DNA of 64,000 nucleotides, from positions 1 through 64,000 of the IMG/VR virus record IMGVR_UViG_3300028676_000003. The stretch is one strand, 5' to 3'. The notes below the pieces were generated by a model, which worked only from the letters and a program-made list of their open reading frames with translations, did no database searches and was not told where the DNA came from. Positions 15,216 to 52,177 of the stretch are shown here, piece by piece. The position numbers and the translations under genes are program-made. Position 1 is the first letter of the stretch; each line of letters starts with the position of its first letter.

Positions 15216-18200
15216 ATGGAATTAGGTAAACGTATAAATCGACACATACCAAGTGACTTTACTGATACAGTAATGATTACTCTTGATGATATAATCATGC
15301 GGATAAGTGTTGCAGGTAAGTCTTCTATTGATGTAAGTGGTTTAAGACTTAGCCCATTTTTATTTACATTATTTAGAAACATATCATTATGAAATTAGGT
15401 GAAAATATAAACAAACATGTACCAAATTATTTTACAGATGTGGTTATTGTTACATTTGCTAATAATACAATAATTAGCTTAGGTGTTAGAGGGAAATGTA
15501 AAATTAGAGAATTAAACCTTGACAGTTATATGTTTAGAATGTTTAGGGGTAAATTATTATGAAATTAGGAAGCACCAAGAAAGAAACAATAATGTATTTT
15601 ATTGATTTAGTCAATAAAAATTCATTCAAGGTAGCCTATGCTAGACTTGATTGTAGTATTCCTATATTCAATCAGGTAAGCCAAGGTATTAACATTATAA
15701 GAACATCAAGAGACAATGAACTTAGGTAAATTTAAATCAGCACCAAACATAAGAATCGCTATGGATATGATTCAGCGAAACCTTCAAAACAAATACATTG
15801 TTAATACTGGTGGTTTTGTACATAAGTACATGCCTAATCGTATGGGAGAAGTTATGCAAGAACGTTACACCTTATTGATATCTGATGATTCTAGGTGAGC
15901 CAAGAAGAGACAAATTGGATAAAAGTATATCAAATGATATAAGTTTTCCAATTATACAGAAAGGTCGAGAGACCTTAGAGTATGAACTATGGTCTAAAAT
16001 CAAAAATGACCTTGGAATTAAGGTAATGGATTCAACACCAAGAGTAACAAAGATTTATAACAAAATAGATATATGAGAAAACTTATACAAATAGGTAAAC
16101 CACTTCAACGAAAGTTTAATAATACTATGACTAATAGATTGTTAACTAGACTTAGTAATCGTGTTGAAAAAGACCTTGCATTTCCGTTGATTGAAGATTT
16201 AGTTAATAGCTACAAAACAGAGGATATAAGCGATTTTATGTCTTTATATATTAAAGTAAAACACGTAAATGCAGATGGATTTATTGGATGGTCAGCAGGT
16301 AGAGGTGTCGATGTTGGGCATGTCTTTGACGAATAGAACACGTCCCTTAAAAATTCACATACAACAAACAATATCTCATAAATGTGTTGATATTATTGGT
16401 GTGAACACCTACAACGATGTTAATGTTATTTTAACAAATCGGGTTATCCGAGCGGTTAATTTCGAAATCCGTAAAATACGTAAACCATGAAACTAGGGAA
16501 TAAAACAGATGTAAATACCGTAACTAATGCTTTACATGAGCTTAAGTGGGATATTGTTTGGGATGCTGTTGCGAAAGAAACAGGACTTGATAATATGGGA
16601 ACAGTGAGTGAAGCGATTTGGGATAAGATAGACGATGAATTATTCTTTGATTTTTATTATATTGACTCAATAAATCCAACATATCCATGAAATTAGGTAA
16701 ACAAAGAAGTAATCCAATTCGTTCACTTATTCAGTCTCTTGCTTATACAAAGTTTTGGGATGAAAGTTTTAGTGCTACAAAACCTGAGTTATGGAATGAT
16801 ATAAGCAGAAAGACTTGGGATAGAGTAAACAATGAAATAATTCCAATATCAGTTAGGAGTGAAATTAGGTAAACCAATACAAGATATAGTCACTAAGGCG
16901 GTTAAAAATCTATGTTACTATAAGTTATGGAATGATACCACAGCTGTAACTGACCGTGATTTATGGGAAGACTTAGCTGTTAGGATGTGGGATAACGGAT
17001 TTAATATAGAGATAAGTGAAATTAGGTAATCCAATAGGACAATATAAACATGTAACAATGCTGAATAATTTAGCGTTGTCAATCAGATGTAATGATGAAG
17101 ACTATGATATAGCTGATATTGTATTATGGGAAGGTGTAAAACAAGCAATAGGAAATGGAGAAGTTAGTCTTAGGAGAATTTATAGGGGTTAACCTAACCA
17201 AGCTTATAAATAAAAATCAATTGGATATGGATAAAATACTCTATTTGAAGGTTAATAACCTTGATTTTGATAACGTATTCAATGACATTTATAATAGCGT
17301 AACAAGAAACATTCAATTCAGACACTTGATTGAGGAACATATCTTGTATGACAGAGAACAAAGAGATGCAGTTAATCAAATGTTACCTTTTTAATATGGA
17401 ACTAGGAGATACAATATACTACGAAATGCGAAATAAGATATCAGATAATATTTGGTTTGTACTTGCAGATGAGAACTTGAACATTCAAACCGAAATTGGT
17501 AATGAAATTAATGAAGAAATTTGGGAAAAACAAATCATTTTTCCTAGTAGAGGTGAAATGATTTAATATGAAATTAGGTGAAAGACAACTAACAAAAATA
17601 CTAATAATCAATGATGTTAACACAATAATTAATATTGATTTGCGTCGAATATATTATAACGAAAGAATTAATTTCACTGGTAGTACGCTTCTAGGGAATT
17701 TAAGAATTATTAATTTAACTTGGAGTATACGTGAACTTAGGTAAAAGTAAATCAGAGAATTTTGAAGATTTAAATAAAGAACATAAGAAAGACTTACATG
17801 AGAATATTAAGGTTTCTCTTGATAGAGTATGTCTTGATTATTGGGATGATTGGGATAGATGGGCGTCAGGACCCGTAACACAATTAATAAAGGGAATTAG
17901 ACCAAGAGTATATGAATTTAGGAAAACAAATAGACAGCGTTGATTATCGAAATAATGTTCTTATATCGATAAACAATATGGAACAACAAATAAATGCTCC
18001 TAAGTATGATTATGTTCATGGATGGGGGCCTTGGGCTGACCTTGATTGGTTTGTTGATATATTTCATTCAGATTTTAGAGTATGGATTTAGGTATTTCAC
18101 AAGCAAATAAACTATCAGATATTGATAATGAAGGGAGATTTACATTCAGCGAATCAAGTAGATTCAGAATAAAGCTTAGACAAGAGTATTGTGATAAAAG

Positions 18201-18966
18201 GTATAGTGAAGGAGTTTTTATTACAGCAAATTTTAATTTTGTTGACTTAAATATACAAATAAATGAAATTAGGTAATCATACAAGAGAAACATTCTATAC
18301 AGTCCATCATATTTGGGCTAAGTTGCTTGAACGCAATAAGAATGAACGTATAGCTCTAACGCTTTGGAGAAACGTTAATAATTCAACTAATGATAATATA
18401 AGTCTTCAATTGGCTCCATATAAAATAAAACGAGTATGATACTAGGTAATAAGGTTGAATACAAGCCATATAGCGGAATTGGTTGTTATACTAGGGTTTA
18501 TATAAATGGTTTTATGCATAGTCTTATACATAGAATTGTATCAATTAAAGTAACCAGTAGACTAACATTAGGACTACAAAGGATTAGTAACAATAGAATC
18601 ATAATCAATGAAATTAGGTAGACACTTATACGATGTAACGGCAAGTGAAGGTGCTGGAAACATGCAGACTTTCTTCATGATGTATACCTATGGTAAGCTA
18701 GAAACTAAATTGGCTAATTGGATGTATGCTAGAATGATACGAGGTTATGGTAATACGTTACCAATAAATTATAAAGTACTATGGACATGGGGAAATTGGG
18801 ATTAGGAGAGCCGAGGTCGGTAAGTTTAGAACATGACGTAAGGAAACTATCAAACCATATGTTTGACTTGGTATATGATGTTAAACTAGAACACAGACCG
18901 TTCGTAAATACTAACGCTAAGATTAGACGAAATCTAATTGATGTGAGAAATTTACAAGTAAAGTAA
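15216..18966 (+). repeat. MKLG microprotein array, block B (about 21 micro-ORFs)
   Basis: Starts at 15216, 15389, 15559, 15716, 15885, 16073, about 16320, 16487, 16687, 16859, 17016, 17155, 17396, 17568, 17731, 17912, 18082, 18263, 18436, 18608, 18796. Confidence 0.9.
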
Positions 18967-19032
18967 AACTTTTTATCAAATAATTTGGTATATTGAATTA
19001 TTATACATACCTTTGTTAAAAATAAATCAGAT

Positions 19033-19239
19033 ATGAGAGCATTAGTTTGGATTCTTTTATTCATTATACAAGTTATTACTGGCGCAATGACCATTTGTAC
19101 TTGGATTCTTTGGGTAACAAGCTTCCCAACAAAAACAGATATGTTTTATCCTTGTTTTGCATCATTTATTATCTGTAGCTTAGCGTTTATTATTAATCAA
19201 TTCCTGCAACATACGTGGGATAATTACAAAGACAATTAA
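19033..19239 (+). CDS. small membrane protein
   Basis: Two TM helices; promoter box 19008-19015. Confidence 0.7.
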   Translation: MRALVWILLFIIQVITGAMTICTWILWVTSFPTKTDMFYPCFASFIICSLAFIINQFLQHTWDNYKDN

Positions 19240-19242
19240 ATT

Positions 19243-19659
19243 ATGAAAGATTTACAAAGTTTCATTACGGATATGGTTCGTATTGAAGAAATTGAGTCAG
19301 TTCAAGCATTTGGACACTACCCATTTCAATTAATGTCAGAGGGGTCTGATGATTCGTTAACTCTTGCCGTGCTTGACTTAGGTGATGTAATACCTTGCTA
19401 CAAGATATTTGCTGAACACTTAGCGAAGGGTGCCAAAAGAATCTATATGTCTATTGACTTTCCTGCGGGTGGTGACTTAGCAGAAGACTTCGTTGCTGTA
19501 TTCCAATACGAAAACGAAACCTTTAATGTTGTAGCGTTGCCATATGATGCTGAGGGAACACAATCTCCACAAGTAACAACTGAACAAAGCGTTCACTTAA
19601 GTGAACTCAAAACTCAGTTTGAAACGATTGTTAAAACTTTCATTAAGCAAGAGGCTTAA
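19243..19659 (+). CDS. hypothetical protein
   Basis: 138-aa ORF. Confidence 0.75.
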   Translation: MKDLQSFITDMVRIEEIESVQAFGHYPFQLMSEGSDDSLTLAVLDLGDVIPCYKIFAEHLAKGAKRIYMSIDFPAGGDLAEDFVAVFQYENETFNVVALPYDAEGTQSPQVTTEQSVHLSELKTQFETIVKTFIKQEA

Positions 19660-19680
19660 TATCAATCAAAAGAAAAGTTA

Positions 19681-19714
19681 AGGGATAATCTGATTAGTTG
19701 GATTATCCCTTTAT
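19681..19714 (+). terminator. probable terminator hairpin
   Basis: AGGGATAATC/GATTATCCCT followed by TTATT. Confidence 0.65.
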
Positions 19715-19733
19715 TATATTTAACCAATTAGCT

Positions 19734-22700
19734 ATGCTACTAGGAAAACCATTAGAATCAGAAATCCATAATAATCTATATGATTTATATACCAGTCATG
19801 GACGTATTGCTCATAATCGAAAATGGGAACGAAAACTATTATTACGTTTCTTTGAACTTGAAATGGTTTGGTGTGAAAGAGTTGGAATGACAGATGTTCA
19901 ATTCAAGCGAATAATGAAGAAGATTAACAAACGAAAACGCAAGGAAAATGCTATTAGGAAACAAAATAAGGATTAGAGACCAAGGCGGTAGAGCTATTTG
20001 GTGTGAAGTTGAAGATGAAATAAAAAGAAATGCAACTGAATATATCAATACTATTGTTAATCGCTTATTATGGACAAGGGTAATGGATGAAGTAGGTGAA
20101 ATATCAAGATACAAGATAAAAATATGAAATTAGGACAACCATTTGACTATGAAATAGCTGAGAGCTTAAACCATTTGTACGAAAATAGTGTTCATTTTCT
20201 ACAGAACCGTCTTTTTGATACCGAGACATATTTGCTATTAGATAACATCAATGTATTTGGTGCTTTGATGGTTAGTAGCGTATATATTCCAAGTCTTGAT
20301 GATGATGATTTTTAGATTAACTTGTATTTCTCGTTTATTAATCGTATCTTTGTATCATGAAAGTAGGTAGGTGTTATAAGGAGCAACTAAACCATGAGAT
20401 GAATCATGTTCGGTTTAGAATCGAAAATGTGATTGAGAAATCTAATGATTTAGAGAATGAATCTTTATTACGTCTATTTGGATTTAATTTCAGATTAAAT
20501 AATTTAGGAATATGAATTTAGGAATAAAGGTAAGTCCAAGGTGTCCAAGGCTATATGATAATCTACTTGATGATGTAAATATAGTTTGTGTGTTAAGGCC
20601 ACAAATACCGATTTATCGAATGAAAGACAGGATAGTTAGAGGAATTTTTAATTTATTTATGATAGATGAAATTAGGTAATCAACCGAAAAAGAAACTTGA
20701 ATATGAAACAGTTTATTATGAAATTATAAATGGTATCAGTGATGAACCGTTTTATATAAGAAATAATAACCTTATATACAATCTTTCAGCAGAAATTGGA
20801 GAAGAATTAATAGTCTTTAAAGTATTAAAAGTATGAAGCTTATACCAATAAACAGAGGTAGTGTTGCGACACCAATCTCAACAGAACGAACCAATATGTG
20901 GTATAGTATTGTAAAAATAAAGAATTGGGAATTAGAGGAAGTAAGAAACACTATAAAGGATAATGTAATTGAAACCGTATTCGGGTTAACCCAATTCAAC
21001 AATAAAATGAAGATATGAAATTAGTTCCAATAGCATTTAGATATAAAATCATGCAACTGAACGCTACGCTTTGTGAACATGTAATGGATAATGAGAGAAG
21101 ACAGAAAAAAGTTCATGAATATTGGTCAGTTTGGAAGTTGAGGGTCCGACAAGATGTATTTGCAAATCAATTTACTAATATGGTCAAATGGAAGTAGGAA
21201 AACAGATAACAAGCGAAGCTCTTGAACTCTATAAGGTAATTATCATTACTAAGAAAGAGGTTGAAGAAGTTGTTCTGTTCACTGGTAATAGAAATATGGA
21301 CCCGATAATATCACTAAGATGGACACTAACAGCACTGGCGCAACAATTTGAATTAGATATATGAAATTAGGAAGACAATTAACGAAGGAAGATTTAGTAC
21401 CATGGAGTATTTATCACGAGTTAAGTAGGGATGCTAATACCAAAGCTCATATGCATGCAATGAATGAAGGGTTTAGAGACCTAGATAATTTAAGGGAGTC
21501 AATAGTAATTATGTTAGTAACTTACGGTAGATTTAATTCATTATGGAACTAGGAAAAGAAATACAAAATAAATTTACCTGTTGGGAAGTTTATGAAAAGG
21601 TACGCAGAGAAACTGAAAAGAATTCAAATGAATTTCAATCATTAAAAAAATTAAAACTAAAACTAAGTAGTTATAATCTAATTGTATGGATTTAGGAAAG
21701 ACAACCAACTATAATAAGCAAAGGTTTAATACAGTAATGCTAAGGCTTAAGCTTATTAATCGGAGCGGATGTATTTCAGCTAATGAAGTTTATAATATGA
21801 GATATAGATTTGAAGGTTTATTATTAACACCAAGAATAAATAAATTAATATGAAATTAACAAAGCCCGATAGAAACATTCATTTAACCTTATTTGTTTTA
21901 GGTATGAAAATAAAAGCTTATACGCAAAGAGCACATATCTTTGATATGATTGAAGTAACAGAACAAACAATTATTTTTGATGAAACACCAAGTATGTTAT
22001 GAAACTAGGAGAAAAACCATATTTCAATCTTCAACAATATATTCAATCTAAATGTGCTGAAACACTCTTTTATGAAGTTGAAATTGAATCGAAAATAGAA
22101 ATCCTATTCAGATTTTTAGTTTTGGATATAACATGTAAAAACTTATGAAACTAGGAAATAAAACAAGCAAAAGGAATATTGCAAACTTCAAGGAAGAACA
22201 CACAAGAAAGATGTTCAATACGAACGAAGCCTATGCAGTATGGCATATGTTTAATCGTATTAATAGGAAGATGATTAATACTCATGATATAACAATACCA
22301 TGGAATTAGGAATACCTGTAAGGATTAATTTTTATGATGAAAAAAATCCAATCCGTAAGTTAAAGAACGATATTTGGAGTTTTGTAGCTCCATTTGTTAT
22401 GTTACGTGACGCTCATGAACCATTTAATATTAGACCAAGTGTCGTAAATGGAATAATTAACCAAGATTTAGAAAATAGTTTTGATGAATTATGAAGCTAG
22501 GACAAAACATAAAAAAGAAAAATTCTCCAAGGAGACTGGTTGATATTACTGTAGCCCAGTTGAATATTGATTTACATATTCACCTTACAATAATTGGATT
22601 AGAATATAGAGTAATCATGGAATTAGGTAAATATACTAACATATGCGTTTAGGAGCAAGAACAGGAGCAACACTAGGTACGCTCATCGATATTGAAACAC

Positions 22701-25700
22701 CAATGTTTGAGATTATCAAACAAAATATAAATAACAATAAAGCGGGAAATCAGTTACTGAGTAACGTTAGCCGACCAATAAGTAGGATTCATAATTCAAT
22801 TTGGACAGCGGTAAACTTTAAATTAATGACATATGAAGCTAGGACAGAATATAAAAGAAGATTACAGGACGGGAATAGATTTTGGCCTTTTTTTTAGTAA
22901 AAATGGACAAATAACTGGTACTGGAATGCAGATATTTAGTAAAATAACAAGACACTTGATAGCATTAGAAACACTAAATGTAAATGAAATTAGGAGAAGC
23001 TAAAAGCAGACAATCACGTAGAAATATCAAAGAAGTGGTTACAACAGATAGTATTATGATGCTAATTAATCAGTTTAGACCTCTTATTCCAAACGGACCC
23101 AATAAATTTATTGGAAGATTAAACAGATATAATATTTACATCAATGAGATTAGGTAAACCAATCCTTCATCAACTAACAATGAGCCTTAACTTTGTGTTT
23201 AAGTATCAAAAATTTGACTCGAAGGTTTCTTCGTTAAAGAGAAAATGGAACTTTCAACAATTTGAAATTATTACAATTACACACTTATGAAACTAGGAGA
23301 AAAGATACATAACTATGAAGATATTGAAAATTTAATAAAATCACCTCTTGATGATAAGCACATGTTCAACGGAAAGTATGAATTGGCTAGACTTATTAGA
23401 AGACTGATGATTAACTATAATGTTTTTGTAAGAGAAGAGCAAATATGAAACTAGGGAAAAGAGTTGCTAATTATCGAGATATTGAGTTTTACATTAAAGG
23501 TATTCTTGATGATAAATACATGTACTATGATGTACCTAAAGAAGCACGAAGTATAAGAAGCAATAGAAGTTATAATATTTTTATTTATATGGACATATTC
23601 AATAATTTAAGATGAAACTAGGAGAACCATTAATGAAACGAAACTTAGGTGTTCTCAACATGAATATTAGATATCTACTTGATAATACAGGTCAGAATAT
23701 TAAACCCGCAGATTTTTTATTGGTTCGAGGACTGAGAAGAAGAGTAGTAATGTATAATTTTAGAGCAACACAACGAGAAATATGGAATTAGGAAATAGAA
23801 TAAGTGATAGTAGAAAACATATCTATTATGAGATAAAATCTACTTGTGTGAAATCTAGCGAATTAGAAGCTAAACGATTGAGAACCAACCTAATTGATTG
23901 TAACATACACATAGCAAGAATAAGATGAAGCTAGGAAATACGTTAAAAAATAATTTACATGTTGAAATTAAAACTATTCCAAGTAACTTGTTAGTGAAAA
24001 TGGACCACAAGCGACCTAATAATCCATTCTTTCAAAGTGATAATATGATGATACAAGCTTACAACAGAATGACATTGTATTTGGGAAATATTGTTAAAAT
24101 AATAAATAATCCATGAAACTAGGAAAGAAAACAGACATAAAATGGTCCGAAATGGGAATGATGCAGACCGATATGGTTAAAATAATAGCCAGTAATTCAA
24201 AATTCGTTTATCCAATCATTCTTAGGATTGAAAGACAATTAACCGATTTTAAAGAAATGATAAGCTATGACGCTAGGGAAGCCTATATCCAAATCCAGTA
24301 ATTACTATAACCGAATACTCGCTATTGAAACTGTTCGTAATCAAATGGGTGGACAATTTCTTATGAAGGATATACACTTTGAATATTTAGATGAACAAAG
24401 AAAAAGTCGTGAAGTAGGAGTATTCGATTTAATGGTTGTTTATAAAGATATGACACTATGAAACTAGGAAAAAAAACTAACCATGAGGCAATCTATAATG
24501 GATTATATGTAGCTAAGCAAAGTATACTGAAAACAATAACGCAACATTTACATACTAAGTATTTAGAAGCGAGACAAAGCTTAGGTGTTAGACAAAGTAT
24601 TGTAAATACAATTTGGATTCAAATAATATAATATGAAAATAGGGAAATCACTTAGGCAGAACACTAAGATTTTTAGGACACAAGGACTTGATATGCTAAT
24701 AACATACCAAATCCTCTATGCTAAGGCAAGCCACTATTCGTCATTGGATATTATAGACTTCTTTAGGGAGTTCAGAATTACAACATTTAGTAATGATAAC
24801 ACACTATTCATATGAAAATAGGAAAATCATTTAAGATGGAAATAGGTTGTAATAGAAGAGAAATGATTGATTCAATGATTGAAAACAAAGACTTATATAT
24901 AATGTCAAGACAACACAGAACACAAGCTATTATTGATTATTTTAGCGGATATATACCAACAACATTTCGATATGGACTTAGGAAATAGTACAGTAAAACG
25001 ATTCAACACAAAAAAGATGCTTCAACTCATTTATCTCAGACAGTATCGAATGAACGTCAGTAACGAATGGCGTAAGAATGGTAAAAGATTCTCTTTGGTT
25101 TATCCAAATGATACATTTATGCCGTTGTTGAATCGTTACGGACCAACAATAAAATTATGAATTTAGGACCCTCAAAATATAATACTCTAGGAAAAAAAGT
25201 ATTTTATGAAGTATTAGAACGAACATATCAAATCTATCATACTATGGCAAAGCTTAGTATTGAAGACACACCAACACCACTTAACGTAGTTGAAAGTGAA
25301 ATAAAACAAATTAGAATATGGACATAGGAAAACAAGTAACACAGATGCTAACGCTGGACATTACATCACAAATATTAAACAAGATATATAATCAATATCA
25401 GGTCGTTATACATAGTACTGGTGTAGACTTATTCATGAGGTTTAATGTAGAAAGACACAAGCAATGGATTTAGGGAAATCAGTAAATGAGAAATTACTAA
25501 ATAATATAACAATTGAAGTATTCAATAAAATATACTATATGCTAGGTAATGGTAATGCTTTTGGAATGGATTATTTTATTAGTCTCGAATTTGATGAAGG
25601 TATAGAATGGATATAGGGAAATCACAAGTTTATTTGGTACAACAGTATGTAACGATGGTAGTTGTCAATAAGATATATATTGTTCCATTTGATAGACCAA

Positions 25701-28700
25701 AAGAAATGAGATGGAATAATTTTCGGACAAGTTTCGTTGAACAAAGACTTAAGTTATGATTCTAGGAAAGCTACAAAGAAAAAATATTGGTATGCCAATG
25801 AGATGTGTTCATAATGAAGTTAGAACCATGTTGATACATTCAGATAAAGATGGACGAACAGAAGTCTTACAAACAACCGATAAAATTCTATCATTAACGA
25901 GAAGAAATATTGAGATATGAAACTGGGAAACACACAAAAAGTTCACTTAGGAACTGAACTTAAATATGTTAATTGGAACGTTAGAAGCAAGGTTGAAGAT
26001 AAAGCAACGAGAAGCGCAACACTACCAATAATGCGAATTTTTGTCAGAATAACATTCAGTTCAATAAGAGAAATATGAAACTAGGCGATATAAAAAAAAA
26101 TGATATAAAGGTTGTTGTTTCTGATTGGCATAAAGAATCAGTATTTGATTTTCCTTTTAAATTTGGACTAAGTAATTATTACATCTTTTCAAGATTTAGA
26201 AGAACAGTAACAGTAGGACAAAATTTTAGTTTATGATATTAGGTAAGAAAATAGATAACGGCAAGTTCATTCAGAATGAAATTAAAACATTTCGTACAAG
26301 ACAAAATTATATGAAAGATTTAGAAATAAATCGTTATGTTTATGACCAAAGTCTTAGTGTATTTAATACAGTTAGAATTAATCTTAGCTTCATTTATCAT
26401 CTAGCATATAAATTTTACTTATGGATATAGGAGAATACACAGGTAAGCTGATAACAAAGACGATATCTAAGATAATTGAAGGAACTGGTAAAAACATTCA
26501 TTCAAAAAGAAATGTTCCACGTGGAACATTTCATCAACCATTAGAACCAATTGATATATGGTTCAGCATAACAACCCAAATGAATAGATTATGAACATAG
26601 GTAAAACAGTAGAATCACAAGTAAGAAGCGAATTAGCAACGGCAAAGCTATATGAGCAGTGTTTTCATCACGAATTACATAGCAGAATGTCAAAAGAAGT
26701 ACATAAGCTAATTGATGCTAGTATTTGGGATAGCCTAATTGAGAAGGTAACTGTTATCGCTAAGTGTGAAGAGTTGGAACGATGGAATTACGAAGCAATG
26801 AGTCAATGGAATTATGAAAATAGGTAAAGAAGTGGTTAATACAATACAAACTAGACTAGGACCTATATATGGAAATTGTTTTATTTATAATAAGATTCCT
26901 ATGAGTAGAAGGATTCATGAACAAGTAAGGAAACGAATATGGAACAACTTAGATTCAACAGTAGTTCAAATTACTATTCTTAATTTAGAAAAATTATGAA
27001 TTTAGGAAAAGAAATTGGTAGAGAACTTAACAGCAAATGTTATAGGGGACTGCATCAATTTACAAGTTATCATCATTTGGAACGCAAGGTATCTAAAGAG
27101 TTATGGTCGTATCTTGATGAACGGATTTGGGATAGAGTAATTGACATAGCACAATTGGCTTCGAATGGAGTTGATGATAGTAAAACACTGGAAGAAGAAT
27201 GAAAATAGGAAAAAGAGTAATACCGATTGGTCCAAAAGACACATACAATGAAATTACACGTGGTATGATGCTTGAAATTAAAGGAAAGGTTAAGTATAAT
27301 CCAATTATGGATGTTGTAGATAATACTTGGACAAGGATATTTATTCGTCTAATAAATTTTCAAAATATGTTATGAAATTAGGAAAATCACTAAATTACGA
27401 AACTGGTGTTTACCAAAGCGGTATTCAATCAATAACTGATAACTATACTAGGAAAGGACAAACAGAAGACATACGAATTGAGTTGATACGTCCGTTAAGA
27501 CGTATGAAACAACGAGTGAAAGCCACGTTAAATGACATGACAAGGATAGATAGCTTGAGGTTCTTTACAATTATTGATTTCGACGATGCAGAATTAGACC
27601 AAACTGAAAGTATAATATGAAACTAGGACATGCACCAATTAGATGAATATAGGAAATAAGTTAGATAATACTATCTTACATAAGCAACAAATATTGCTTA
27701 AACAAGAAATGGGTCAACAAATAAGGTTTAATGGTAATGTATTAACAAATTATGACGTGGTTGATTTGTTCATAATAATAAGACATGCAGTAACAAATCA
27801 AATACGTGGATATAGGAAAAACAACAAGTGATGAAATATATTTTAATATAAGTGATTTTCATCTTAAGATACTCACACAGGAAAATCACAATATGTTCAC
27901 AAGAACTAGAAGAGAAGAAATGCTTTTGATTGTATTTCAAATACCACGAAACCTGAGAGTAAGTCTGAAATTAAAAGTAGGAAAAAGATGATATTAGGAA
28001 ATAGCACAAGAGATAACGTAAGCATGTGTTCAAGCAACATCAATCATAATCTATTGACTACCATACAAGGTACAATAAGAAGAGGTGTAAGACAGCGCAA
28101 AGAAGAATTAGCTCTAATTGTCTTCATGTATGAAAGAATAAATTCATTGAGGAAATTATGAAATTAGGAAAATCAATTCAAGGAGTATCAGGTAAAATAA
28201 ATAGTGATTTATTCAATAATTGTTATAAACACAGGTTTAATGACCTGACTTCAATGAAGTTATATGAATTAGTTTATGTAGCGATTTGGCAGAAGACTAG
28301 TCGAAGATTATATATTAATATGTCAATTATTAATATATTAATACCAATATAATTCACGATATGAAATTAGGACAAGAACAATCAAGAGCATTACATAAAC
28401 AAAGAACCCTCATGCTTCTTAGAATGATGAAAGAGAAGAACGAGAAAACAAAAAACATTAAAGTAGTAGCACAAATATTCAACAGAATAAGACTACAAAG
28501 AATAAGCTTATGAAATTAGGAAATAACATAGACCCAAAAGGAATATTTAATAAGATATTTCCAACTGGAATAAGCATTGTATCAATAGTTGTTTCAGCAA
28601 ACAGACTAATAAAAATGAATGTTCATTCAAGCAAAGAAGCCTATCAGGCAAGTAGGGGAATGGATATCGGAAACATTCTTTCAGTAGAAGTTGATATTGA

Positions 28701-31700
28701 CCATAATACAATTATTCACAATTACTCACAACCAACAGAATTATGAAAATAGGAGAACACACATCAATGAAATTATCTTTCGGCTTTGTACAAGACTTAT
28801 GGTTCGCATTGACTAGTGAACAAAATAAGACACTTAAGGACGCTGAGTATGTAACTAAGCCTGAAATACGCATAGGAATACCACAAATTGAATATGCTAT
28901 TTATGACGGGTGTAATTCATGTGCAGGATGAAACTAGGAAAATCGATAGGCGGGTTAATGGAAACTAAGGTTGCATTAAACACACTAGGAATGGCTTACC
29001 AATTAACAGAGGAAAGATATATCGGTTCAATTGATACTCGGTTTATGACCCTGAGATTTACCAAACCAAATACGGTAGTATGGTGGGAGCTTCAAGAAGA
29101 TAGAGATTTGGACCAAATGATTAAAAATATTAACGATGAAAATAGGTAATAAAACAGATAAAACACTAATAACTAGTGAAATGGAGAAAACGATTGTTAA
29201 TCATGTATGTTTACAAGTAAGAAGAATTGACTATCGTAACTTCAAAGAAATTAATTTAGTTTCTGATAATATTAGTCGATTATGTGGTTATATCAGCCAA
29301 AAGGTAATAACCTTAGATACATTAAGAAGATGGAGTTAGGAAAGAAATTACATAGACATACTGATACCGTGGCTTATTTCGTTGAAGGAATGGTTAATGC
29401 TGACTTTCATAGAGATAACACTAAGATTGCTTATCAATTCCTTAGAGAAGTCAGAACGAGACTTGATAACCAACTTGAACAATTCAAGATAAGAAACATT
29501 ATACACAGAAAACCATTACCACGTAGAAAACCATAATTATATGAAATTAGGACCAACACAGAAACACCACATAATGTCACCGCTTAACGATATACCTTTA
29601 GGTTGTCATATCACATTTATCAATGAGAAGATGGTGTTGTATGATACAGCAGAAACCATACGAATTTATTTGGATGATTTCATGGTTAAGATTGATTTCA
29701 CAGATATAGGAATTGACTCATTAGAACTTTATAGAATATGAACATAGGAGAATCAAAAAACAGAGAAGTATTCAATGCGCTGGCAGAAGTTCCGACAAGT
29801 TGGCAGTTCTATAACAAACAAGGAAATCTTTATATTGTAAATGATGATACAACCATACAGATTCATATAAGAAACTTTACGATTAGATATCCCGAAGAAA
29901 TCTTAAGTCTATATGAACCACCAAATGAAGAACCCTAATGGAATTAGGAAAAGACATTAAAAGACAGCCAAGCATCTATTCGATAGAAGAAACAATATTC
30001 AACTATACTGAAATTAGGGTCCTCAGAGAACCAATCACTAGAATGAGACTCAGACTAATAAGACAAATGCCACGAACAGGAAGCAGATTTAAATTATGAA
30101 AATAGGAAAAAACATAGAACCAAAACCAACAGCAACGATTCTTAACAGAAGTCTAGCTGATAAGATGTGGAAGACCGTAACAACCAGTGTTCATTTTAAT
30201 GCACGTCAAGGAATGAATAGACCAATGCGAATGATAAGAGACCTAATGGGGATAACATTTGATTTATGATACTAGGAGAGAACAAAAGAAGCATGTGGAA
30301 CAATACAAAGGTACTTGAAAATTCAAGTGTATTTAGAAGCCAAATGATAGGACAAATCAACGAGACATATTCCAAGGAATATAAAGCTCATATATGGGAT
30401 ATAGGGTTTAAAAGGATGCCTGAATTATTAAGAAATAAATTATTTATACGTGATACTAGGTAAATCAATGCTCAAAGATTTCTATTACATTGAAACAGGG
30501 ATGATAAGAACCGAAATGATGAAAGTTATTATTAAAAGTAGGATATTGGTTAAGATTAATAAAACATTTCCCAATGCAAACAGAAATAATATATGGAATC
30601 AATTCATAAGTATGCAAACTCTAAAAATAACAAATATACGATGATACTAGGAAAATCACAGAAGATACCACAACCCAAACGCAGATTTACCAATGATAAT
30701 CCAATATTGACTAATCTAACAGCACAATGGGATGAGATAGAGAAAACACCAAATAATCTTAACGAATACTATAAGTATAGAGACACACAAGACTATTTGT
30801 TGATATTCAGTATTCTAGGCATCTATAAACGAAAATTAAGATTTTATAGATGAAATTAGGAAAACCACAAGGCTTTGATTTAGTAGGAAAAACATCAGCG
30901 TTTAGAGCTATAACACAATGGGAGATTTACGGAAATACAACAGGCGATATGACATTCCTTATATGGAATATGTCAGAGAACATAAATCTAATTAGAGTAA
31001 AAAGAATAAATCAACCATTATGAAAATAGGTAATTCACTATCTAAAAAATATACCAAGCTTGTAGAAAATATTGTACAACACACATATAATGAATATAGA
31101 AAAAATACTGAAAAATATCTTAAATCTATAAACAGAGAGAATACAAGACCAATAGGAACTGCTAAACCTCAGAATATATGAAACTAGGCTACCCAATAAA
31201 GAAATATAAGCTTCTTAAGCTCGTTGAATCAGGGTTTACGTCTCCTGATATGAATGTGGGCTATATGAACCAAGTTTGGAATATGAATAGTGATGTGTAT
31301 ATAAGCAGAATACTAATGATTAAACCTTTAATACTAAGACATTGGAAATAGGAAAACACATACCAAATCATCTGCCTGAGAACAAGTATCTGCATAAGAT
31401 AGCACAACTCAGAATGTTCTTCTTTAAGTCGATTCGAGTTGAATATTATCTATATAACCATGTAGTAAATAGAATGTGGATTAAAGTAACTCAATTAGTA
31501 GAACCAATAACAAATAACGAAATATGAACCTAGGAAAACCAAAACACCAATGGGAAGAAAGATTTGATATGTATCTTTTAAGAAGCGAAATATCAGCAAG
31601 GGTTTCTCTTAGCTTTAAGACTCCTGAAAGACACGATATATGGAATAAATTAGTGATAACAAGACTTATAATAGGAAATATACAAAAGATATGAAATTAG

Positions 31701-33884
31701 GAAAAACAAAAAAAACCGTATTACATAAAGAGAATATAACAATGTGGAAAGGTTTCTTTCTTGAAATTGACAATCTAACAACAGGAAGAGTAAGATATCA
31801 TCCAATTGGGATGGATAGAAAGATAAATAGACAAACTCAGCTAAATTTAAAATTGAAGTGATGAAATTAGGAAAATCAGTAATAAAATTATATAGAGGAA
31901 TATCACAATTCTCTAATCTTAGTCCTATAACAGTAAGTTGGAACCTCAACCTAGCAGTAGGAAGAAAGATACATGACCCTGACGTAGCTATGCCGATTAA
32001 AAGCTATTTAATGTTGGAGTTTATGGAACTAATAATAACCACCGAATTTAACCACATATGAACCTAGGAGAACAAATACAATACTTACCTGATAATAAGT
32101 ATCTTAAAAGAGATGCTAATCTAAGGTTTGTCTTATTTAAAACACAACCAAAAGTAGACCTTGATATTAAAATATATGTAGGTAAACTAACTTGGGCCAG
32201 CGTTGAAAGACACCTTAGAACAATTAAACCCAATATATATGAATCTAGTATATGAAACTAATACATATCAATACAACCAAATATAGACATGACCAACTTA
32301 TGGATATGTCAGAAATGAGATACTATATGAAAGAACAAATAGATGATAACGATATTGATAACCATGATGTAAAAACTCCTATACGAAATATCGCAAGAAA
32401 TCTAATAGAAATCAATAGACGAAAACTTAAAACACCCAAGGTATGATACTTAAGCCAATCCTAATGAAAAGAAATAAGACAAACCAAATAGCTGATGTTG
32501 AAGATATGAGATATCTAATGATGAGATATATTAATGAAGCAAACCTCGTTGATAGTAAAAACCTTATATGGCAAATCAGAACAAACCTATTAGAAATCAA
32601 TAGAAGAATACCAAGAAACATATGATACTAGGAAAACAAGTAAAAACAAAAATAGGTGAAATGGCAATACCGAATGGTGTTCCTTTAGCAATGTATAGCA
32701 ATGATAGTCCAATTTTTATGGTGTATGATAGAATAAGAAGACTACTAGGACATAAAAGTAGAACCAATATAATATTATGAAACTAGGAAAACGAATAAAC
32801 CCAGACGTAAGAGCAGAAACAAGAGATATCATTATACATACTATTCACTACTTTGAACACAATATAGTTAAAAAGTCTGATTTTTATAAGATACAAGATA
32901 TGTACGGAAATATCCTAAGAGACCTTAAGCCATATGTAACCGCCCATAACGACATTTTAAAGGAAAAAACGGACCACAGAGAATATATAATACAAAGATA
33001 AACAAAATGAACATAGGAAACCATATAACCAAATACAAATACTCATTTGAACAATCTAACGATAAAACATATATAAGGCTTCCTATGTGTAAGTATATAG
33101 ATAAAGGATATGCATATCATACACAACAAATCATAAGGCAAATGACAGATAAAATGATTAGCATACTTATGAATAAAATAAGACAAATATGACTCTAGGA
33201 AAAGAAGTTGAAGACATAAGATATAAAATCTTAAGAAGACAAGACCTATACGGAATGAGAAGCGAAATGCTTAATATCATCCATAATGAGAACCATTCTA
33301 CCGTGATAAATCTTATATGGGAAATGCCTACACGGATGCCAAGGACCCTCACACAACAAATACCTCGGATATGAAGCTCGGAAGGAATATAAGAAAAACA
33401 AGGAATATTGCCGTTGAAATTATACGAAATGAATCATGTAAGCAACTACTCGACAAATGCGCCCCTAAAGCCTATAATTACCACACGAACTATACCAATA
33501 ACAAAAGAAAACCACTTCAACTACAAACAGAACTATTATGAACATAGGAAACCATATAATACAAAAAAGAATAATACATCATGAAAAAACAAATATGATT
33601 AAAATAATGATACACGTAATCATAGAGAAATATACCATACAAACAAGAGACCTCGTATGGGAAAATACCATTGTTGACCCAATAATCCTAATGAGAAAAA
33701 TACAAGAAATATGAAACTAGGAAAACACTTAAGAAAGGAAACACATATATTCTGCGGTTCCGATAAACTTAGCGAAAAGATAGTAGACGACCTTATTCAG
33801 AGTCATGTCTATAAAGAACTATGCCAAGTAAGAAGAGACTTGAATTTCGAACTCATCCCACCTAAGTATCATCTAATATATTAA
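19734..33884 (+). repeat. MKLG microprotein array, block C (about 82 units, mean period about 170 bp)
   Basis: Starts at 19734, 19948, 20124, 20357, 20512, 20666, 20833, 21015, 21188, 21361, 21543, 21686, 21850, 21999, 22145, 22300, 22491, 22617, 22643, 22833, 22984, 23144, 23287, 23445, 23612, 23782, 23925, 24113, 24267, 24458, 24633, 24812, 24972, 25157, 25318, 25464, 25607, 25756, 25917, 26075, 26233, 26421, 26591, 26814, 26996, 27199, 27372, 27617, 27643, 27806, 27988, 28158, 28361, 28510, 28743, 28928, 29136, 29330, 29541, 29738, 29938, 30096, 30266, 30450, 30641, 30850, 31020, 31178, 31342, 31524, 31691, 31861, 32058, 32252, 32443, 32622, 32777, 33007, 33189, 33371, 33538, 33711. Confidence 0.9.
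26513..26528. promoter_or_regulatory. parS: parS-like centromere palindrome
   Basis: TGTTCCACGTGGAACA (inside a perfect 20-bp palindrome at 26511-26530) matches the bacterial parS consensus. Confidence 0.7.
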
Positions 33885-33899
33885 AGAAACATATAACGC

Positions 33900-33940
33900 A
33901 CACATTTGTGTACATTCGCTGGCTCATGGCCTTCGGCACA
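33900..33940. repeat. bipartite repeat copy (ACACATTTGTGTACAT + ATGGCCTTCGGCACA)
   Basis: Both halves recur at 34328-34343 and 34361-34375. Confidence 0.8.
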
Positions 33941-33953
33941 TAACAAATCCATA

Positions 33954-34271
33954 ATGAATAATAACCACATACAGAAAAATCATATACAAATGAATAAAGC
34001 TATATACGAAATAATCCAAAGACTAGAAATGTCTTATCATCCAATCCTTGGAACAACATATAATCTTATAGAGATAACACAAGAAAAAGACTACTCAGAA
34101 TCCGAAGGACCAACCTTTGAATATAATAATTCTATGAGACATATCCTCTCCCGTGTAAAAGAAATCCAAGAGGTAAAAGAATGCTCACATGGTAAGTCTT
34201 CCATACAAATGATAGGCAATAGAAGCTACTGCGACATATGCCAAAAATACGTCTATAACGCCATAGACTAA
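33954..34271 (+). CDS. hypothetical protein with possible C-terminal Zn ribbon
   Basis: ECSHG...YCDICQK. Confidence 0.6.
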   Translation: MNNNHIQKNHIQMNKAIYEIIQRLEMSYHPILGTTYNLIEITQEKDYSESEGPTFEYNNSMRHILSRVKEIQEVKECSHGKSSIQMIGNRSYCDICQKYVYNAID

Positions 34272-34279
34272 CACATAGA

Positions 34280-34830
34280 TATACCCTAAATGTGGCAACG
34301 CCCATGGCGTGTGCAACACTGCCATGTACACATTTGTGTACATCCATGTCCGAGCCATGTATGGCCTTCGGCACACGGACTCCACGGCTCTCATAGAAGC
34401 CGTTTACGGCATTAATATGTTCCAAATGGTACATAGGTTAGCACGTAGCTATTTTAGGGCTAATTTGGGCTTAATTTCGCTAGGGTGGTAAAAAGTGGTA
34501 TTTTGTGTCGTTTTTAGGTACATAAATTGGAAAATGCTTTTAGGGTACATATATGCATATAGAAATACCTCCAATAAAACCTCCAATAAATCGGTTGTCT
34601 TCGTGTATTCGAAGGCGTTTTTGGCTGAGATTTTTCAGATACGGGCATAGTACACCCCTTATGTACACAAATGTGTCATTTGGCTTCGGTTGAGGTCGGT
34701 TTGTTGTATGCTTCGCCCGTGGCCCGAATAAATCTATATAGAAATTCTATATGAATCTATTTGACATAGGGAATCTGCATCGGACAAGTCCAACAACGTG
34801 ATTTTCGATAAGGCGTTTTTAAAAAGGATT
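34280..34830. other. GC-richer non-coding island with palindromes and repeats
   Basis: ATGTACACA-TT-TGTGTACAT palindrome 34324-34343; inverted 16-mer copy 34661-34676; ACCTCCAATAAA tandem; AAGGCGTTTTT twice. Confidence 0.6.
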
Positions 34831-34899
34831 TACATAGGCATGGTTTTTAGGTACAACAAAAAATCCCCAAACTACAATCGAGTTTGAGGTCTTGTTAAG

Positions 34900-34915
34900 T
34901 GTTCCACGTGGAACA
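34900..34915. promoter_or_regulatory. parS: parS-like centromere palindrome
   Basis: TGTTCCACGTGGAACA, intergenic, identical to 26513-26528. Confidence 0.75.
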
Positions 34916-35058
34916 ACTAGGTCACACACTACTATTATGCATAGCGTATCGTTAAAGTACAAAGGTACGACAAATATTTCTAATAAAAAACTTGTATATG
35001 AATTATTTTTGTTGTATCTTTGCAAACTTTTTTATTTTGTTGAGATTACTTCTAGCTA

Positions 35059-35090
35059 CAAAGGTACGAAATATAAATGAGACTACCAAA
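35059..35090 (-). promoter_or_regulatory. leftward Bacteroidota-type promoter
   Basis: Minus-strand TTTG (35087-35090), 20-nt spacer, TACCTTTG (35059-35066). Confidence 0.7.
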
Positions 35091-35100
35091 AAAATTCGTT

Positions 35101-35119
35101 ATTTAGACTCAGTCTAAAT
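35101..35119. promoter_or_regulatory. 9-1-9 palindrome, Fur-box-like
   Basis: ATTTAGACT-C-AGTCTAAAT. Confidence 0.45.
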
Positions 35120-35127
35120 GTTAACTT

Positions 35128-35190
35128 TGTCGTAGGACGGAGTCTACTCTTCCACCCATTACGGCACGCCCTTGTTTGTATTTTTCAACG
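35128..35190 (-). ncRNA. putative small RNA, GTAGACTCC family copy a
   Basis: Minus-strand TATCTTTA box at 35194-35201; no ORF; GTAG-ACTCCGTC-CTAC hairpin. Confidence 0.5.
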
Positions 35191-35296
35191 GTGTAAAGAT
35201 AGGAAAAAGATTTTGAATAAAAAAATAAAAATCCAGGTATTTTCTAAAAAGTTTTATATATCTTTGCCTTATCAGAAACCAACTAAATAAAATGAT

Positions 35297-35653
35297 ATGA
35301 AAAAGTTAAGTGAATTATATAGTATATTATTAGAGGACTTTAAAAACCGCAATAAACAAATCGATGAGACAGACGGTATATATATGGGTGTAAGTGAATA
35401 TAGCTTTTTATGTAACTGTTTAAAGCAATTACATAAAGAAGGAATTTTCAACGATGATGAGTTTGCGTATTTATATTCTCACTTTATATTACAGAAACCA
35501 AGTAGAACCGTAAATACTGCTTTTTATGACCATGAGTTATATGATGGAGATTATGTTTGGTTTAAGACGCTATGTTATAGTAAAGAAGCTTTTGCGTTAC
35601 GAGTTCAATTATTAACAAACATCATTTCTAAATTAAAAGAGGAATCTAAATAA
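35297..35653 (+). CDS. hypothetical protein
   Basis: After promoter box 35259-35266. Confidence 0.7.
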   Translation: MKKLSELYSILLEDFKNRNKQIDETDGIYMGVSEYSFLCNCLKQLHKEGIFNDDEFAYLYSHFILQKPSRTVNTAFYDHELYDGDYVWFKTLCYSKEAFALRVQLLTNIISKLKEESK

Positions 35654-38598: not shown

Positions 38599-39372
38599 AT
38601 GAGTAAAGAAGTTAAAAGAAAACCATTATTAAGCACTAATAATCACAAAACGATTAAAGGCGAAAAGGTTGGTTATAAAACGTATATTCTTTATATGTCG
38701 CCTTTTAAGGCTAACAGCAAAGGTAAAAACGTTTGTTCCCACGCATCGACGGGTTGTGCTGAAAGTTGCTTAGCGGGTTCGGGTTTTGGTGGTATGTACG
38801 TTAATGTTAAAAACGGGCGTGTTGCAAAAACTGAGTATTTTTTAAGTAGTCGTACTGAATTTCTTTATCAGATTAAATCTGAGATTGAAAAGGCTATTAA
38901 AAAAAATGAAGCGTCAAACCTAAAGAATGACGAAAAGACTATCTTAACATTTCGTTTAAATGGAACAAGTGATATTGCATACGAAAAGTTTAGAGTTTTT
39001 GAAGGGAACAAAAACATTTTTGAAGTTTTTCCTGACGTACAATTTTACGATTATACAAAGAACTATTTAAGATTTGACAAGGTGTTACCTGCAAATTATC
39101 ACTTAACATTTAGCCGTTCAGAGACAAACGATGTTAAGGCTATGGAAATTCTTAAAAAGGGTTATAACGTTGCAATTGTTTTCGATAACGTTCCTAAAAC
39201 CTACAAGGGTTATGAAGTGGTAAACGGAGACAATGACGACCTGAGATTCTTAGATAAAAAGAATGTAGTCGTAGGATTGAAATATAAGAAAATGACGGGC
39301 AAAGGTGCTGACAATAAAAAGGCTTTTGAAAGTGGTTTTGTTATTCAAAACAAAGAATTGCAATTAACATAA
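38599..39372 (+). CDS. gp88-like protein (Cys-cluster phage family)
   Basis: NVCSHASTGCAESCL, FRLNGTSDI, FYDYTK, NYHLTFSRSE and GDNDDLRFLD motifs. Confidence 0.75.
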   Translation: MSKEVKRKPLLSTNNHKTIKGEKVGYKTYILYMSPFKANSKGKNVCSHASTGCAESCLAGSGFGGMYVNVKNGRVAKTEYFLSSRTEFLYQIKSEIEKAIKKNEASNLKNDEKTILTFRLNGTSDIAYEKFRVFEGNKNIFEVFPDVQFYDYTKNYLRFDKVLPANYHLTFSRSETNDVKAMEILKKGYNVAIVFDNVPKTYKGYEVVNGDNDDLRFLDKKNVVVGLKYKKMTGKGADNKKAFESGFVIQNKELQLT

Positions 39373-51343: not shown

Positions 51344-52177
51344 ATGAACACAGAAAACACATCAACACCAATTCAAAACAACTCTAAGCTAGTTGAATTT
51401 TTACCAAACGTAACAGGCGATAAGTACCAACGTTTAAACACAAATCGTGTAGTAGATGAAGCACACGTAAGACAATTAATCGAAAGCTTTACACGCTTCG
51501 GAACCGCTGGAGCAAATGTAATTGTAATCAAAACAAAAGCATTCGGAAACGGCAAAAAATATGAGTACCTAAAGTTAGACGGTCAACACACCGTGGAAGC
51601 TTGCAACCGCATCGATTTGCCTTATAACGTGTTAGTAGTTGAATTGCTAAATGATACACGTTTAGAAGTTACTTTGTTTATGTCAGCATTAAACAACAAC
51701 AAAAAAGCTTGGAGCAATAAAGTTTTTGTTAATGCATTCTTAAACACAAACGAAATCGAATCTTATATCGAATTGGCCGAACTGCTAAAAAATAGTAAGT
51801 TAACACTTACAGATATCCTTCACATCTTTTTGGGTAACGCTGGCCGTGTTGAAAACAATTTATTTCGTGAAGGTTTATTCACGTTTGATAAAATGGACGA
51901 TGGAAAAGAGCTTTTACAAGCTACTACAAAGGTATGGGATTTTATTCCAAACTCAGCACCTTGCAGACGTAGCCTATTTAAAGTTATGCGTATCGTAAAG
52001 GATTTTGATGTTTTTGCCGATGCAATTATAGCAAAAAGCCAAGAGGGACAAAAAGGAAAATTCACAACTGACGAAACAACGTTTTTCTATGAGTTGGAGA
52101 AGCTTGCAAAAGAAACCTTTAAAGGGCAAACGTTTGATTTTCCTAAAAAGAAAAAAGCGAAAGCAGTAACAAAATAA
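51344..52177 (+). CDS. ParB/Srx-like N-terminal domain protein (DGQH type)
   Basis: NRVVDEAHVRQLIESF...KLDGQHTVEAC...MSALNNNKKAWS. Confidence 0.65.
   Translation: MNTENTSTPIQNNSKLVEFLPNVTGDKYQRLNTNRVVDEAHVRQLIESFTRFGTAGANVIVIKTKAFGNGKKYEYLKLDGQHTVEACNRIDLPYNVLVVELLNDTRLEVTLFMSALNNNKKAWSNKVFVNAFLNTNEIESYIELAELLKNSKLTLTDILHIFLGNAGRVENNLFREGLFTFDKMDDGKELLQATTKVWDFIPNSAPCRRSLFKVMRIVKDFDVFADAIIAKSQEGQKGKFTTDETTFFYELEKLAKETFKGQTFDFPKKKKAKAVTK

Follow-up and report, generated by a model that had tools for sequence, protein, structure and literature searches.

The closest described counterpart of the sites analyzed here is the chromosomal ParABS centromere, in which parS is bound by Spo0J/ParB. The 16-mer TGTTCCACGTGGAACA is the perfect parS of Pseudomonas aeruginosa (PMC4368675) and was found here to be the parS of most Flavobacteriaceae. 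Chromosomal parS sites occur in a small number of copies a few kb apart and can lie in genes or between them. Both features are shared by the two copies of the identical palindrome found in a 369-kb jumbo phage from peat (IMG/VR record IMGVR_UViG_3300028676_000003). However, the phage sites are carried by a virus, are not near an oriC, mnmG or parAB locus, and have no cognate parA or parB encoded on the same replicon. Self-contained partition modules exist in phage-plasmids, namely, ParAB-parS of P1 and SopAB of N15, the latter with centromere palindromes dispersed over several kb and partly inside genes. Actinobacteriophages likewise harbor parABS (PMC7157519). Those phages encode their own ParA and ParB and use private centromere sequences, whereas the present phage encodes neither and carries the sequence of its likely host. 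SGI1, a mobile element carrying centromere sites, relies on the parABS system of the IncC plasmid (PMC10954446), but it is an integrative element that pirates a helper plasmid, while here a lytic-type jumbo phage would pirate the system of the chromosome. Engineered parS/ParB-GFP tagging of phages P22 and lambda reportedly shows in principle that ParB loads on parS-bearing phage DNA inside infected cells (PMC4697819, PMC13392384), although these are artificial insertions of plasmid parS with supplied ParB, in contrast to the natural, chromosomal-type sites described here. Literature searches for natural host-type parS on lytic or jumbo phages returned nothing.

Two exact parS sites in the phage genome

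The window analyzed comprised the first 64,000 nucleotides of the 368,549-bp genome. The sequence-only reading of this window had reported two perfect parS palindromes, and this observation was confirmed, with both exact 16-mers present at the positions given in the table. Dinucleotide-preserving shuffles of the window gave a mean of 0.02 matches even when two mismatches were allowed, and 0 of 100 shuffles gave two or more. In the whole genome, these were the only matches to TGTTNCACGTGNAACA with 0–2 mismatches, and no T/A-variant sites were found. Two copies are, hence, far beyond chance. The palindrome at site 1, earlier given as 20 bp, extends to 24 bp, whereas that at site 2 is only 16 bp. 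Site 1 is not an assembly artefact, as identical contigs covering it were obtained from two other peat runs; being identical, these contigs carried no information on purifying selection. The codons used at site 1 are ordinary and provide no evidence for selection at the DNA level. A search of the window against Rfam identified only three tRNAs and no known RNA in the non-coding region around site 2, which is dense with other palindromes and hairpins. The GC skew followed gene orientation, and no origin could be placed near the sites.

Features of the phage genome around the parS sites and of the ParB-like gene. G004 is the nearest relative of the phage.
Position	Strand	Feature	Observation
26421..26594	+	57-aa ORF, one unit of a tandem array of about 95 small ORFs	Contains site 1 in frame (N-V-P-R-G-T-F; ..KRNVPRGTFH..)
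26513..26528		parS site 1, exact TGTTCCACGTGGAACA	Core of a 24-bp perfect palindrome, 26509-26532
34272..35296		Non-coding region of about 1 kb holding site 2	Right half (about 34925-35160) conserved in G004
34865..34889	-	Conserved hairpin, terminator-like on the minus strand	Directly left of site 2; in G004 the parS pair lies on the other side of the homologous hairpin
34900..34915		parS site 2, exact 16-mer, intergenic	Two exact copies in the homologous region of G004
34991..35022	+	Near-consensus Bacteroidota-type promoter (CTTG, 20 nt, TATCTTTG)	About 80 bp right of site 2; conserved almost base for base in G004
38599..39372	+	GP88-family (PF17338) gene	Used as the synteny marker
51344..52177	+	277-aa protein of predicted ParB/Srx fold, DGQHR type (here DGQHT), with a helical C-terminal domain	Host-type promoter 39 nt upstream; probably not the parS reader

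Profile searches of the whole genome revealed no ParA-type ATPase (PF13614, no hit; PF01656, only an 11-bit P-loop match) and no ParB_N (PF02195) or HTH_ParB (PF17762) domain, while the control genomes matched. SMC and tyrosine integrase were also absent. The phage, therefore, lacks a complete partition module of the P1/N15/actinophage type, and it cannot run its own partition system or integrate by a tyrosine recombinase.

The predicted ParB/Srx-fold protein

The sequence-only reading also linked the sites to a ParB-like gene 16 kb away. The gene (51344-52177) exists, and the AF2 model of its product (pLDDT 94.5) predicted a two-domain ParB/Srx-fold protein with confidence. The top Foldseek hits were Noc, ParB, pNOB8 ParB-N, PadC, KorB and sulfiredoxin, with probability about 1, and the best PDB matches (Noc, ParB, PadC and KorB) were aligned over about 250 columns. 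The family profile matched sulfiredoxin and Helicobacter pylori ParB in the PDB. The protein also showed weak matches to the PHROG 'ParB-like partition protein' and to TIGR00180 in 11 of 80 family members. Taken with its host-type early promoter, these features could suggest that the protein and the sites form a minimal phage partition or regulatory system. However, no ParB_N or HTH_ParB match was found at E≤1. The family consensus at Box II is DGQHR, and the protein itself has DGQHT in place of GERRxRA, the CTP-binding motif, aligning there with SGERRYRA of the host ParB. The hhalign alignment to host ParB covered only 50 N-domain columns at 35% probability and stopped after this domain, while the Foldseek alignments to ParB and Noc ran on into the helical domain, but with an rmsd of 9–16 Å. 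The ParA-activating LG-R/K-GL motif was not visible in residues 1–40.

The distribution of the gene did not follow that of parS. It is present in the complete relative G002, which has no parS, and only a weak partial match (E = 6.5e-6, 80 profile positions, in a 366-aa ORF) occurs in G004, which has two sites. It is absent from a 98%-complete 37-kb phage with a parS cluster and from 120 other parS loci. A megablast and tblastn search against cultured phages identified no close relative and no homologue of the gene. In relatives, the gene sits among SprT-like and PcfJ genes typical of anti-defence or leading regions. The proposed link to this gene is, hence, not supported, and it is very unlikely that the protein is the reader of the sites. 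The literature assigns ParA-less phage ParB-fold proteins to NTP-regulated nuclease or sensor roles (PMC5512222, PMC12704722). The protein shares its predicted fold, the DGQH(R) box, the absence of a ParA partner and an early or anti-defence-like gene neighbourhood with the non-canonical ParB/Srx-fold proteins of phages and defence systems, such as DndB/DGQHR, DdrB-like ParB and ParB-methylase fusions. It belongs, however, to a distinct family of about 337 members without a Pfam model and has no fused enzyme domain. Of the DGQHR/DndB-like models considered (TIGR03187, PF14072), TIGR03187 was matched by only 4 of 80 members at E≥0.005, and DndB by 1 of 80.

The GP88 protein was also considered as the parS reader, since parS lies 0.5–1.4 kb upstream of the GP88 gene in seven other GP88 loci. 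This was rejected, as its structural model showed a TIM-barrel-like enzyme fold with three invariant Cys and no DNA-binding domain, only 2 of 120 parS-bearing contigs had GP88 nearby, and no parS was found in 52 GP88 loci from genome bins. A search for related loci through ORF 35297-35653 returned none.

Distribution of the 16-mer in relatives, bacteria and other viral contigs

The host phylum was inferred to be Bacteroidota from the near absence of Shine-Dalgarno sites (3.8% SD-like) and from -33/-7 promoters, i.e., TTTG-N17-21-TAnnTTTG boxes placed 17–39 nt before ATG starts, along with GC content. Among 121 Flavobacteriaceae genomes, 110 had 1–3 canonical parS, mostly of this exact variant and typically forming a pair about 1.9 kb apart flanking mnmG. 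Only 22 of 301 Bacteroidota genomes carry the exact variant. These genomes encode a canonical parA-parB operon. A 36%-GC Bacteroidota MAG, binned with a related phage contig, was found to have two exact sites 50 bp apart, next to a 631-aa ORF. Thus, the 16-mer is identical to the predominant parS of the probable host family, the host itself being known only by inference.

Absence of the sites from relatives had been named beforehand as a refuting condition, and it was only half fulfilled. G004 keeps two exact 16-mers in the homologous non-coding region although the flanks and the position have changed, a pattern that indicates selection on the 16-mer itself. In contrast, three complete, more distant jumbo relatives (G001, G002 and G003) and five cultured GP88-carrying phages, four of them jumbo, have none. 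The sites are, therefore, an accessory trait and dispensable for this phage type. This patchy distribution could possibly reflect relics of recombination with host DNA or neutral chance gains without current function. No host-like genes were seen next to the sites. Such a view is unlikely, as both copies are exact with no degenerate copies, the 16-mer is retained in G004 while its flanks and position changed, and the flanks are phage sequence and not of the mnmG-type host context.

The same 16-mer was found in at least 120 IMG/VR contigs, against 3 for a reversed-sequence, composition-matched palindromic control. The sites fall in 91 different flank contexts and prefer symmetric A/T extension. 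Only 1 of 235 loci had a ParB-like ORF and none had ParA. This enrichment also speaks against the absence of function. Other phages carry 4–9 copies within about 10 kb. In phage contig L371, which had no match among cultured phages, 7 of 9 copies lie 1–5 nt after the stop codons of consecutive genes, like intergenic hairpins. This hints at a role that needs no ParB, in which the palindrome would act as an RNA or DNA hairpin (terminator, processing or packaging signal) or as the operator of another phage factor, its identity with parS being secondary. The location of site 2 in a region dense with other palindromes and hairpins is in line with such a role. Such a role is considered unlikely for the present sites. 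It does not explain why exactly the host centromere 16-mer, out of 65,536 possible 16-bp palindromes, recurs in 91 unrelated contexts. Moreover, site 1 is inside an ORF, where a terminator would be harmful, and the stem would have only a 4-nt loop and no consistent T-run.

Possible roles of the orphan sites

The interpretation offered by the sequence-only reading, that the phage recruits host ParB or its own for positioning, segregation in a carrier state or SMC loading, or titrates host ParB, was thus partly supported. Recruitment or titration of host ParB is the most economical reading, and it is fairly likely that the sites are functional loading sites for host ParB. The sequence matches, their distribution, the missing partition genes and the survey counts were established by the analysis, whereas the host, the binding and CTP-dependent loading of ParB and each step that follows are inferred from sequence and from the known ParABS system. 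In the favoured, though tentative, model, host ParB dimers would recognise the two sites, bind CTP, close into sliding clamps and spread over roughly 10–20 kb, covering the small-ORF array and the early-gene region. Host ParA would then handle this stretch like a second chromosome origin. Non-integrated copies of the genome would, therefore, be positioned on the nucleoid and passed to both daughter cells when infection is slow or stalled, as in a carrier state or pseudolysogeny in peat bacteria. Nothing in the genome independently shows a carrier or episomal lifestyle. A single chromosomal parS is enough to stabilise an unstable plasmid through the host Soj/Spo0J system.

In this model, competition with the host's own sites is an unavoidable side effect, and the main rival view is that such titration is itself the benefit. 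Many phage copies with two sites each would strip ParB from the host origin region and disturb chromosome segregation, ParB-dependent SMC loading and division timing in the phage's favour. With only 1–3 sites per chromosome in the host family, even a few phage copies would outnumber them, the phage has no ParA to use the complex, and the arrays of 4–9 copies in other phages suit a sink better than a centromere. Nevertheless, a sink appears unlikely here, as two sites are few for this purpose and complete relatives lack them. Loss of ParB is tolerated in many bacteria, which makes the gain from titration uncertain. A further possibility, also unlikely, is that ParB loaded at the sites recruits host condensin (SMC-type), which would compact or individualise the replicated genomes before packaging. 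ParB-parS is the established SMC loading site on chromosomes (PMC10197239), and the phage genome is about a tenth the size of a host chromosome and encodes no SMC. However, Bacteroides rely on still unidentified SMC complexes (PMC10197239), making the link uncertain in this phylum, and equally large relatives do without parS.

It is about as likely as not that copying the host centromere is a widespread phage strategy that has not been described, of which this jumbo phage is one clear example. In this view, probably thousands of unrelated phage genomes carry orphan, host-type parS sites, from one copy to arrays of nine in 10 kb, without any parAB genes, and would use them to capture host ParB-CTP clamps for positioning, inheritance, silencing or sabotage. 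ParABS is the main chromosome-segregation system of bacteria, and its ParB-CTP clamp mechanism is under active study. A virus that carries only the cis site and relies on the host proteins would represent a new type of host-machinery piracy. The survey suggests that the phenomenon is common. It would also provide a sequence-only handle for host prediction, because the parS variant of the phage should match that of the host, and it could explain how large non-integrating phages persist in slow-growing hosts in a carrier state or pseudolysogeny.

Two parS sites and their genomic context

The 16-mer TGTTCCACGTGGAACA occurs twice in the window and nowhere else in it, even when two mismatches are allowed. 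Dinucleotide-preserving shuffles gave a mean of 0.02 matches, and none of 100 shuffles reached two. The observation made in the sequence-only reading, that the phage carries two perfect parS palindromes, was thereby confirmed. The window represents the first 64 kb of a 368,549-bp IMG/VR virus record (G000), which is rated as complete by CheckV. The last 100 or more bases of the record repeat positions 46-146, indicating that the assembly closes on itself. In the whole genome (33.6% GC), these are the only copies with 0-2 mismatches, and no TGTTTCACGTGAAACA-type variants exist. The parS half-site, however, was found to be over-represented genome-wide: GTTCCAC occurs 73 times against 33 expected (third-order Markov) and TGTTCCAC occurs 39 times against 13, with the copies spread over the genome, whereas the T-variant half-sites are at expectation.

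Site 1 forms the core of a 24-bp perfect palindrome and lies in frame, encoding N-V-P-R-G-T-F, inside a 57-aa ORF. Contigs from two other peat metagenome runs cover site 1 without a single difference. This ORF is one unit of a tandem array of about 95 small plus-strand ORFs (45-87 aa), nearly all of which start with M-[KNDE]-[LI]-G-[KN], usually overlap the previous stop, and are otherwise highly diverged; the AT skew rises to 0.3 across the array. Site 2 is a bare 16-mer in a non-coding stretch of roughly 1 kb. Just left of site 2, a second palindrome, TGTACACA-nn-TGTGTACA, occurs three times, and two of these copies are followed by an identical ATGGCCTTCGGCACA hairpin.

Coordinates of the features in the phage genome and in other phage loci
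Feature	Sequence	Position
parS site 1	window	26513-26528
24-bp palindrome around site 1	window	26509-26532
57-aa ORF containing site 1	window	26421-26594
Tandem array of small ORFs	window	15216-33884
Second palindrome, three copies left of site 2	window	33896-33915, 34324-34343, 34661-34676
Second palindrome, further copies	whole genome	49.75 kb, 358.97 kb
Non-coding stretch containing site 2	window	34272-35296
Conserved hairpin	window	34865-34889
parS site 2	window	34900-34915
Region homologous to relative G004	window	34.9-35.2 kb
GTACCTTTGT motif, inverted copies beside site 2	window	34959, 35058
GTACCTTTGT motif, most plus-strand copies	whole genome	217-366 kb
Untranslated start of the predicted transcript	window	35037-35296
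Untranslated start of the predicted transcript	locus L013	9680-9985
GP88-family gene (PF17338)	window	38599-39372
tRNA genes	window	48961-49638
ParB-like ORF	window	51344-52177
Full parS and clustered half-sites	locus L078 (= phage G011)	1791-1945 (= 35090-35242)
Multi-copy parS array	contig L371	2760-10640

About 86% of the ORFs of 80 aa or more lie on the plus strand, and only 3.8% have a Shine-Dalgarno-like motif. The two-box Bacteroidota promoter (TTTG, 17-21 nt, TAnnTTTG) occurs 55 times on the plus strand against 16 on the minus strand, and more than 30 of the 55 end 17-39 nt before an ATG start. It is inferred from these signals that the host is a Bacteroidota bacterium with low GC, living in peat. 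Profile searches detected no tyrosine integrase, SMC, ParA-type ATPase, ParB_N, or HTH_ParB domain anywhere in the genome, while all control genomes matched in the same searches. Three tRNA genes were identified by Rfam, of which ARAGORN called only one, with an abnormal two-base anticodon loop reading ("tRNA-???").

parS in candidate hosts and in related phages

In a sample of 121 Flavobacteriaceae genomes, 110 have 1-3 sites matching TGTTNCACGTGNAACA. The listed matches are mostly the exact phage variant and typically form a pair about 1.9 kb apart. In one genome, the pair flanks mnmG/gidA in the order ybeY, parS, mnmG, parS. These genomes have one canonical parA-parB operon, in which ParB is 303 aa long with ParB_N and HTH_ParB domains and the motif GERRYRA. 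Across a phylum-wide sample, only 22 of 301 genomes have the exact variant. A 36%-GC Bacteroidota MAG that was binned with a related phage contig has two exact sites 50 bp apart, directly after a 631-aa ORF, plus a third variant site. Hence, the phage carries as many perfect centromere sites as a typical candidate host chromosome.

For comparison with related phages, the GP88-family gene was used as the synteny marker, which returned 80 viral loci. The nearest relative, G004 (233 kb, 64% complete, GP88 72% identical), has exactly two copies of the 16-mer, 38 bp apart, in the non-coding region directly upstream of GP88. That region is homologous to the region of site 2 and shares the promoter CTTG-N20-TATCTTTG, two ACAAAGGTAC boxes, and a GGACGGAGTCTAC block, and it also contains a copy similar to the second palindrome. 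The bases flanking the 16-mers differ between the two phages, and the sites lie on opposite sides of a conserved hairpin. The 16-mer was kept while its surroundings and position changed, which is the signature of a selected cis element. In contrast, three complete jumbo relatives (362, 360, and 288 kb), five partial ones, and five cultured GP88-carrying phages (XacN1, Xoo-sp13, CM1, Tunturi_5, and DC31; four of them jumbo) have none. The sites are an accessory trait of one sub-lineage.

The transcript from the conserved promoter would start with an untranslated stretch of roughly 260 nt, containing a conserved GTAGGACGGAGTCTAC block that can pair with an upstream AGACTC. This may be a leader or a small RNA, although no Rfam match was found. 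The motif GTACCTTTGT occurs 34 times on the plus strand, mostly in the later part of the genome, and six times inverted; two of the inverted copies are beside site 2, and both are conserved in G004. It may be a phage-specific (middle or late) promoter or terminator element.

The ParB-like gene

The ParB-like ORF has no Pfam match, a weak match to the PHROG "ParB-like partition protein" (E = 9e-6), and 337 homologues in a library of 1.8 billion proteins. The family consensus contains NR..HV..L..S...G and DGQHR, where the window protein has DGQHT. The AlphaFold model is confident (pLDDT 94.5), and its best PDB matches are Noc, ParB, pNOB8 ParB-N, PadC, KorB, and sulfiredoxin. Profile searches hit sulfiredoxin, H. 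pylori ParB, and SbnI, and members of the family weakly match TIGR00180, SerK, DGQHR, and GmrSD_N. The protein is therefore a genuine ParB/Srx-fold protein but not a canonical ParB, and its alignment to host ParB covers only 50 N-domain columns at 35% probability.

The presence of this gene does not track parS. It is present in G002, a complete jumbo relative that has no parS, and absent from G001 and G003, the other two complete jumbo relatives, while G004, which has two parS, shows only a weak hit in a different protein. It is also absent from a 98%-complete 37-kb phage with a parS cluster and from 120 other parS-bearing loci. In relatives (L003-L005), the DGQHR-type ParB-fold gene lies near SprT-like and PcfJ genes, a set reminiscent of anti-defense genes or leading-region genes of conjugative elements. 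Published surveys assign ParA-less phage ParB-fold proteins to NTP-regulated nuclease, sensor, or anti-defense roles (PMC5512222, PMC12704722). It is concluded that the ParB-like gene is probably unrelated to the sites. The interpretation offered in the sequence-only reading was therefore only partly supported, as recruitment or titration of host ParB remains the most economical reading, whereas the suggested link to the ParB-like gene 16 kb away was not supported.

The 16-mer in other phages and its possible role

The exact 16-mer is present in at least 120 IMG/VR contigs, whereas the reversed, equally palindromic and composition-matched control occurs in 3. The 20-mer with AA/TT extensions is present in at least 118 contigs, although only 2.4% of the first sample had those flanks; the true total is therefore probably in the thousands, although this is a rough inference. 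The 123 sites of the first sample fall into 91 unrelated flank clusters and show a symmetric preference for A/T extension. Their neighbors are capsid, terminase, helicase, polymerase, and unknown genes. A phmmer search with host ParB and ParA against all ORFs of 235 such loci found one weak ParB-like hit and no ParA.

In several unrelated phages of different GC content, the exact parS lies just upstream of GP88-family genes (0.5-1.4 kb upstream of the GP88 match in loci L013, L042, L053, L057, L063, L064, and L078; also L153 and L194). GP88 itself models as a TIM-barrel-like enzyme with three invariant cysteines and is often the first gene at the left end of Pelagibacter podophages, and the link may reflect an early-region location. 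The 37-kb, 98%-complete phage G011 (locus L078) has one full parS plus five clustered 8-mer half-sites in a 1.05-kb non-coding region next to GP88, which also contains other short repeats. It looks like a centromere or origin-like control region, and no ParB-fold gene of the A1 family is present. Some phage contigs carry 4-9 copies within about 10 kb, and L371, L376, L281, L288, L301, and L341 carry 5-9 exact copies in 6-14 kb together with helicase, DNA polymerase, major head, and tail genes. These multi-copy arrays, along with the low site number in hosts, favor ParB titration, which is the first of the alternatives to the model preferred here. In L371, seven of nine copies lie 1-5 nt after the stop codons of consecutive genes, like intergenic hairpins; a hairpin or operator role without ParB is ranked fourth among the alternatives, after SMC recruitment and binding by the phage ParB-fold protein and ahead of the absence of any function.

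The literature searched describes chromosomal parS biology, phage-plasmid ParABS modules, SGI1 hijacking a plasmid's ParABS, and engineered parS tags on phages, but no description was found of natural host-type orphan parS on lytic or jumbo phages. The interest of the finding lies in its apparent breadth, tempered by binding being inferred from sequence alone.

The identity and rarity of the sites, their conservation in the nearest relative, and their match to the parS of candidate hosts were shown by the analysis, whereas the host itself and the binding of ParB are inferred. The most economical model is that host ParB would load at the two sites as CTP-bound clamps and spread over the surrounding 10-20 kb, which is established behavior of ParB. 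That stretch would cover the small-ORF array and the early genes driven by host-type promoters. Hitchhiking on host ParA for the positioning and inheritance of the non-integrating genome is tentatively favored, since one or two sites suffice for that role, since the phage has neither a detectable tyrosine integrase nor detectable partition genes of its own, and since a plasmid carrying a single chromosomal parS is stabilized by the host system.
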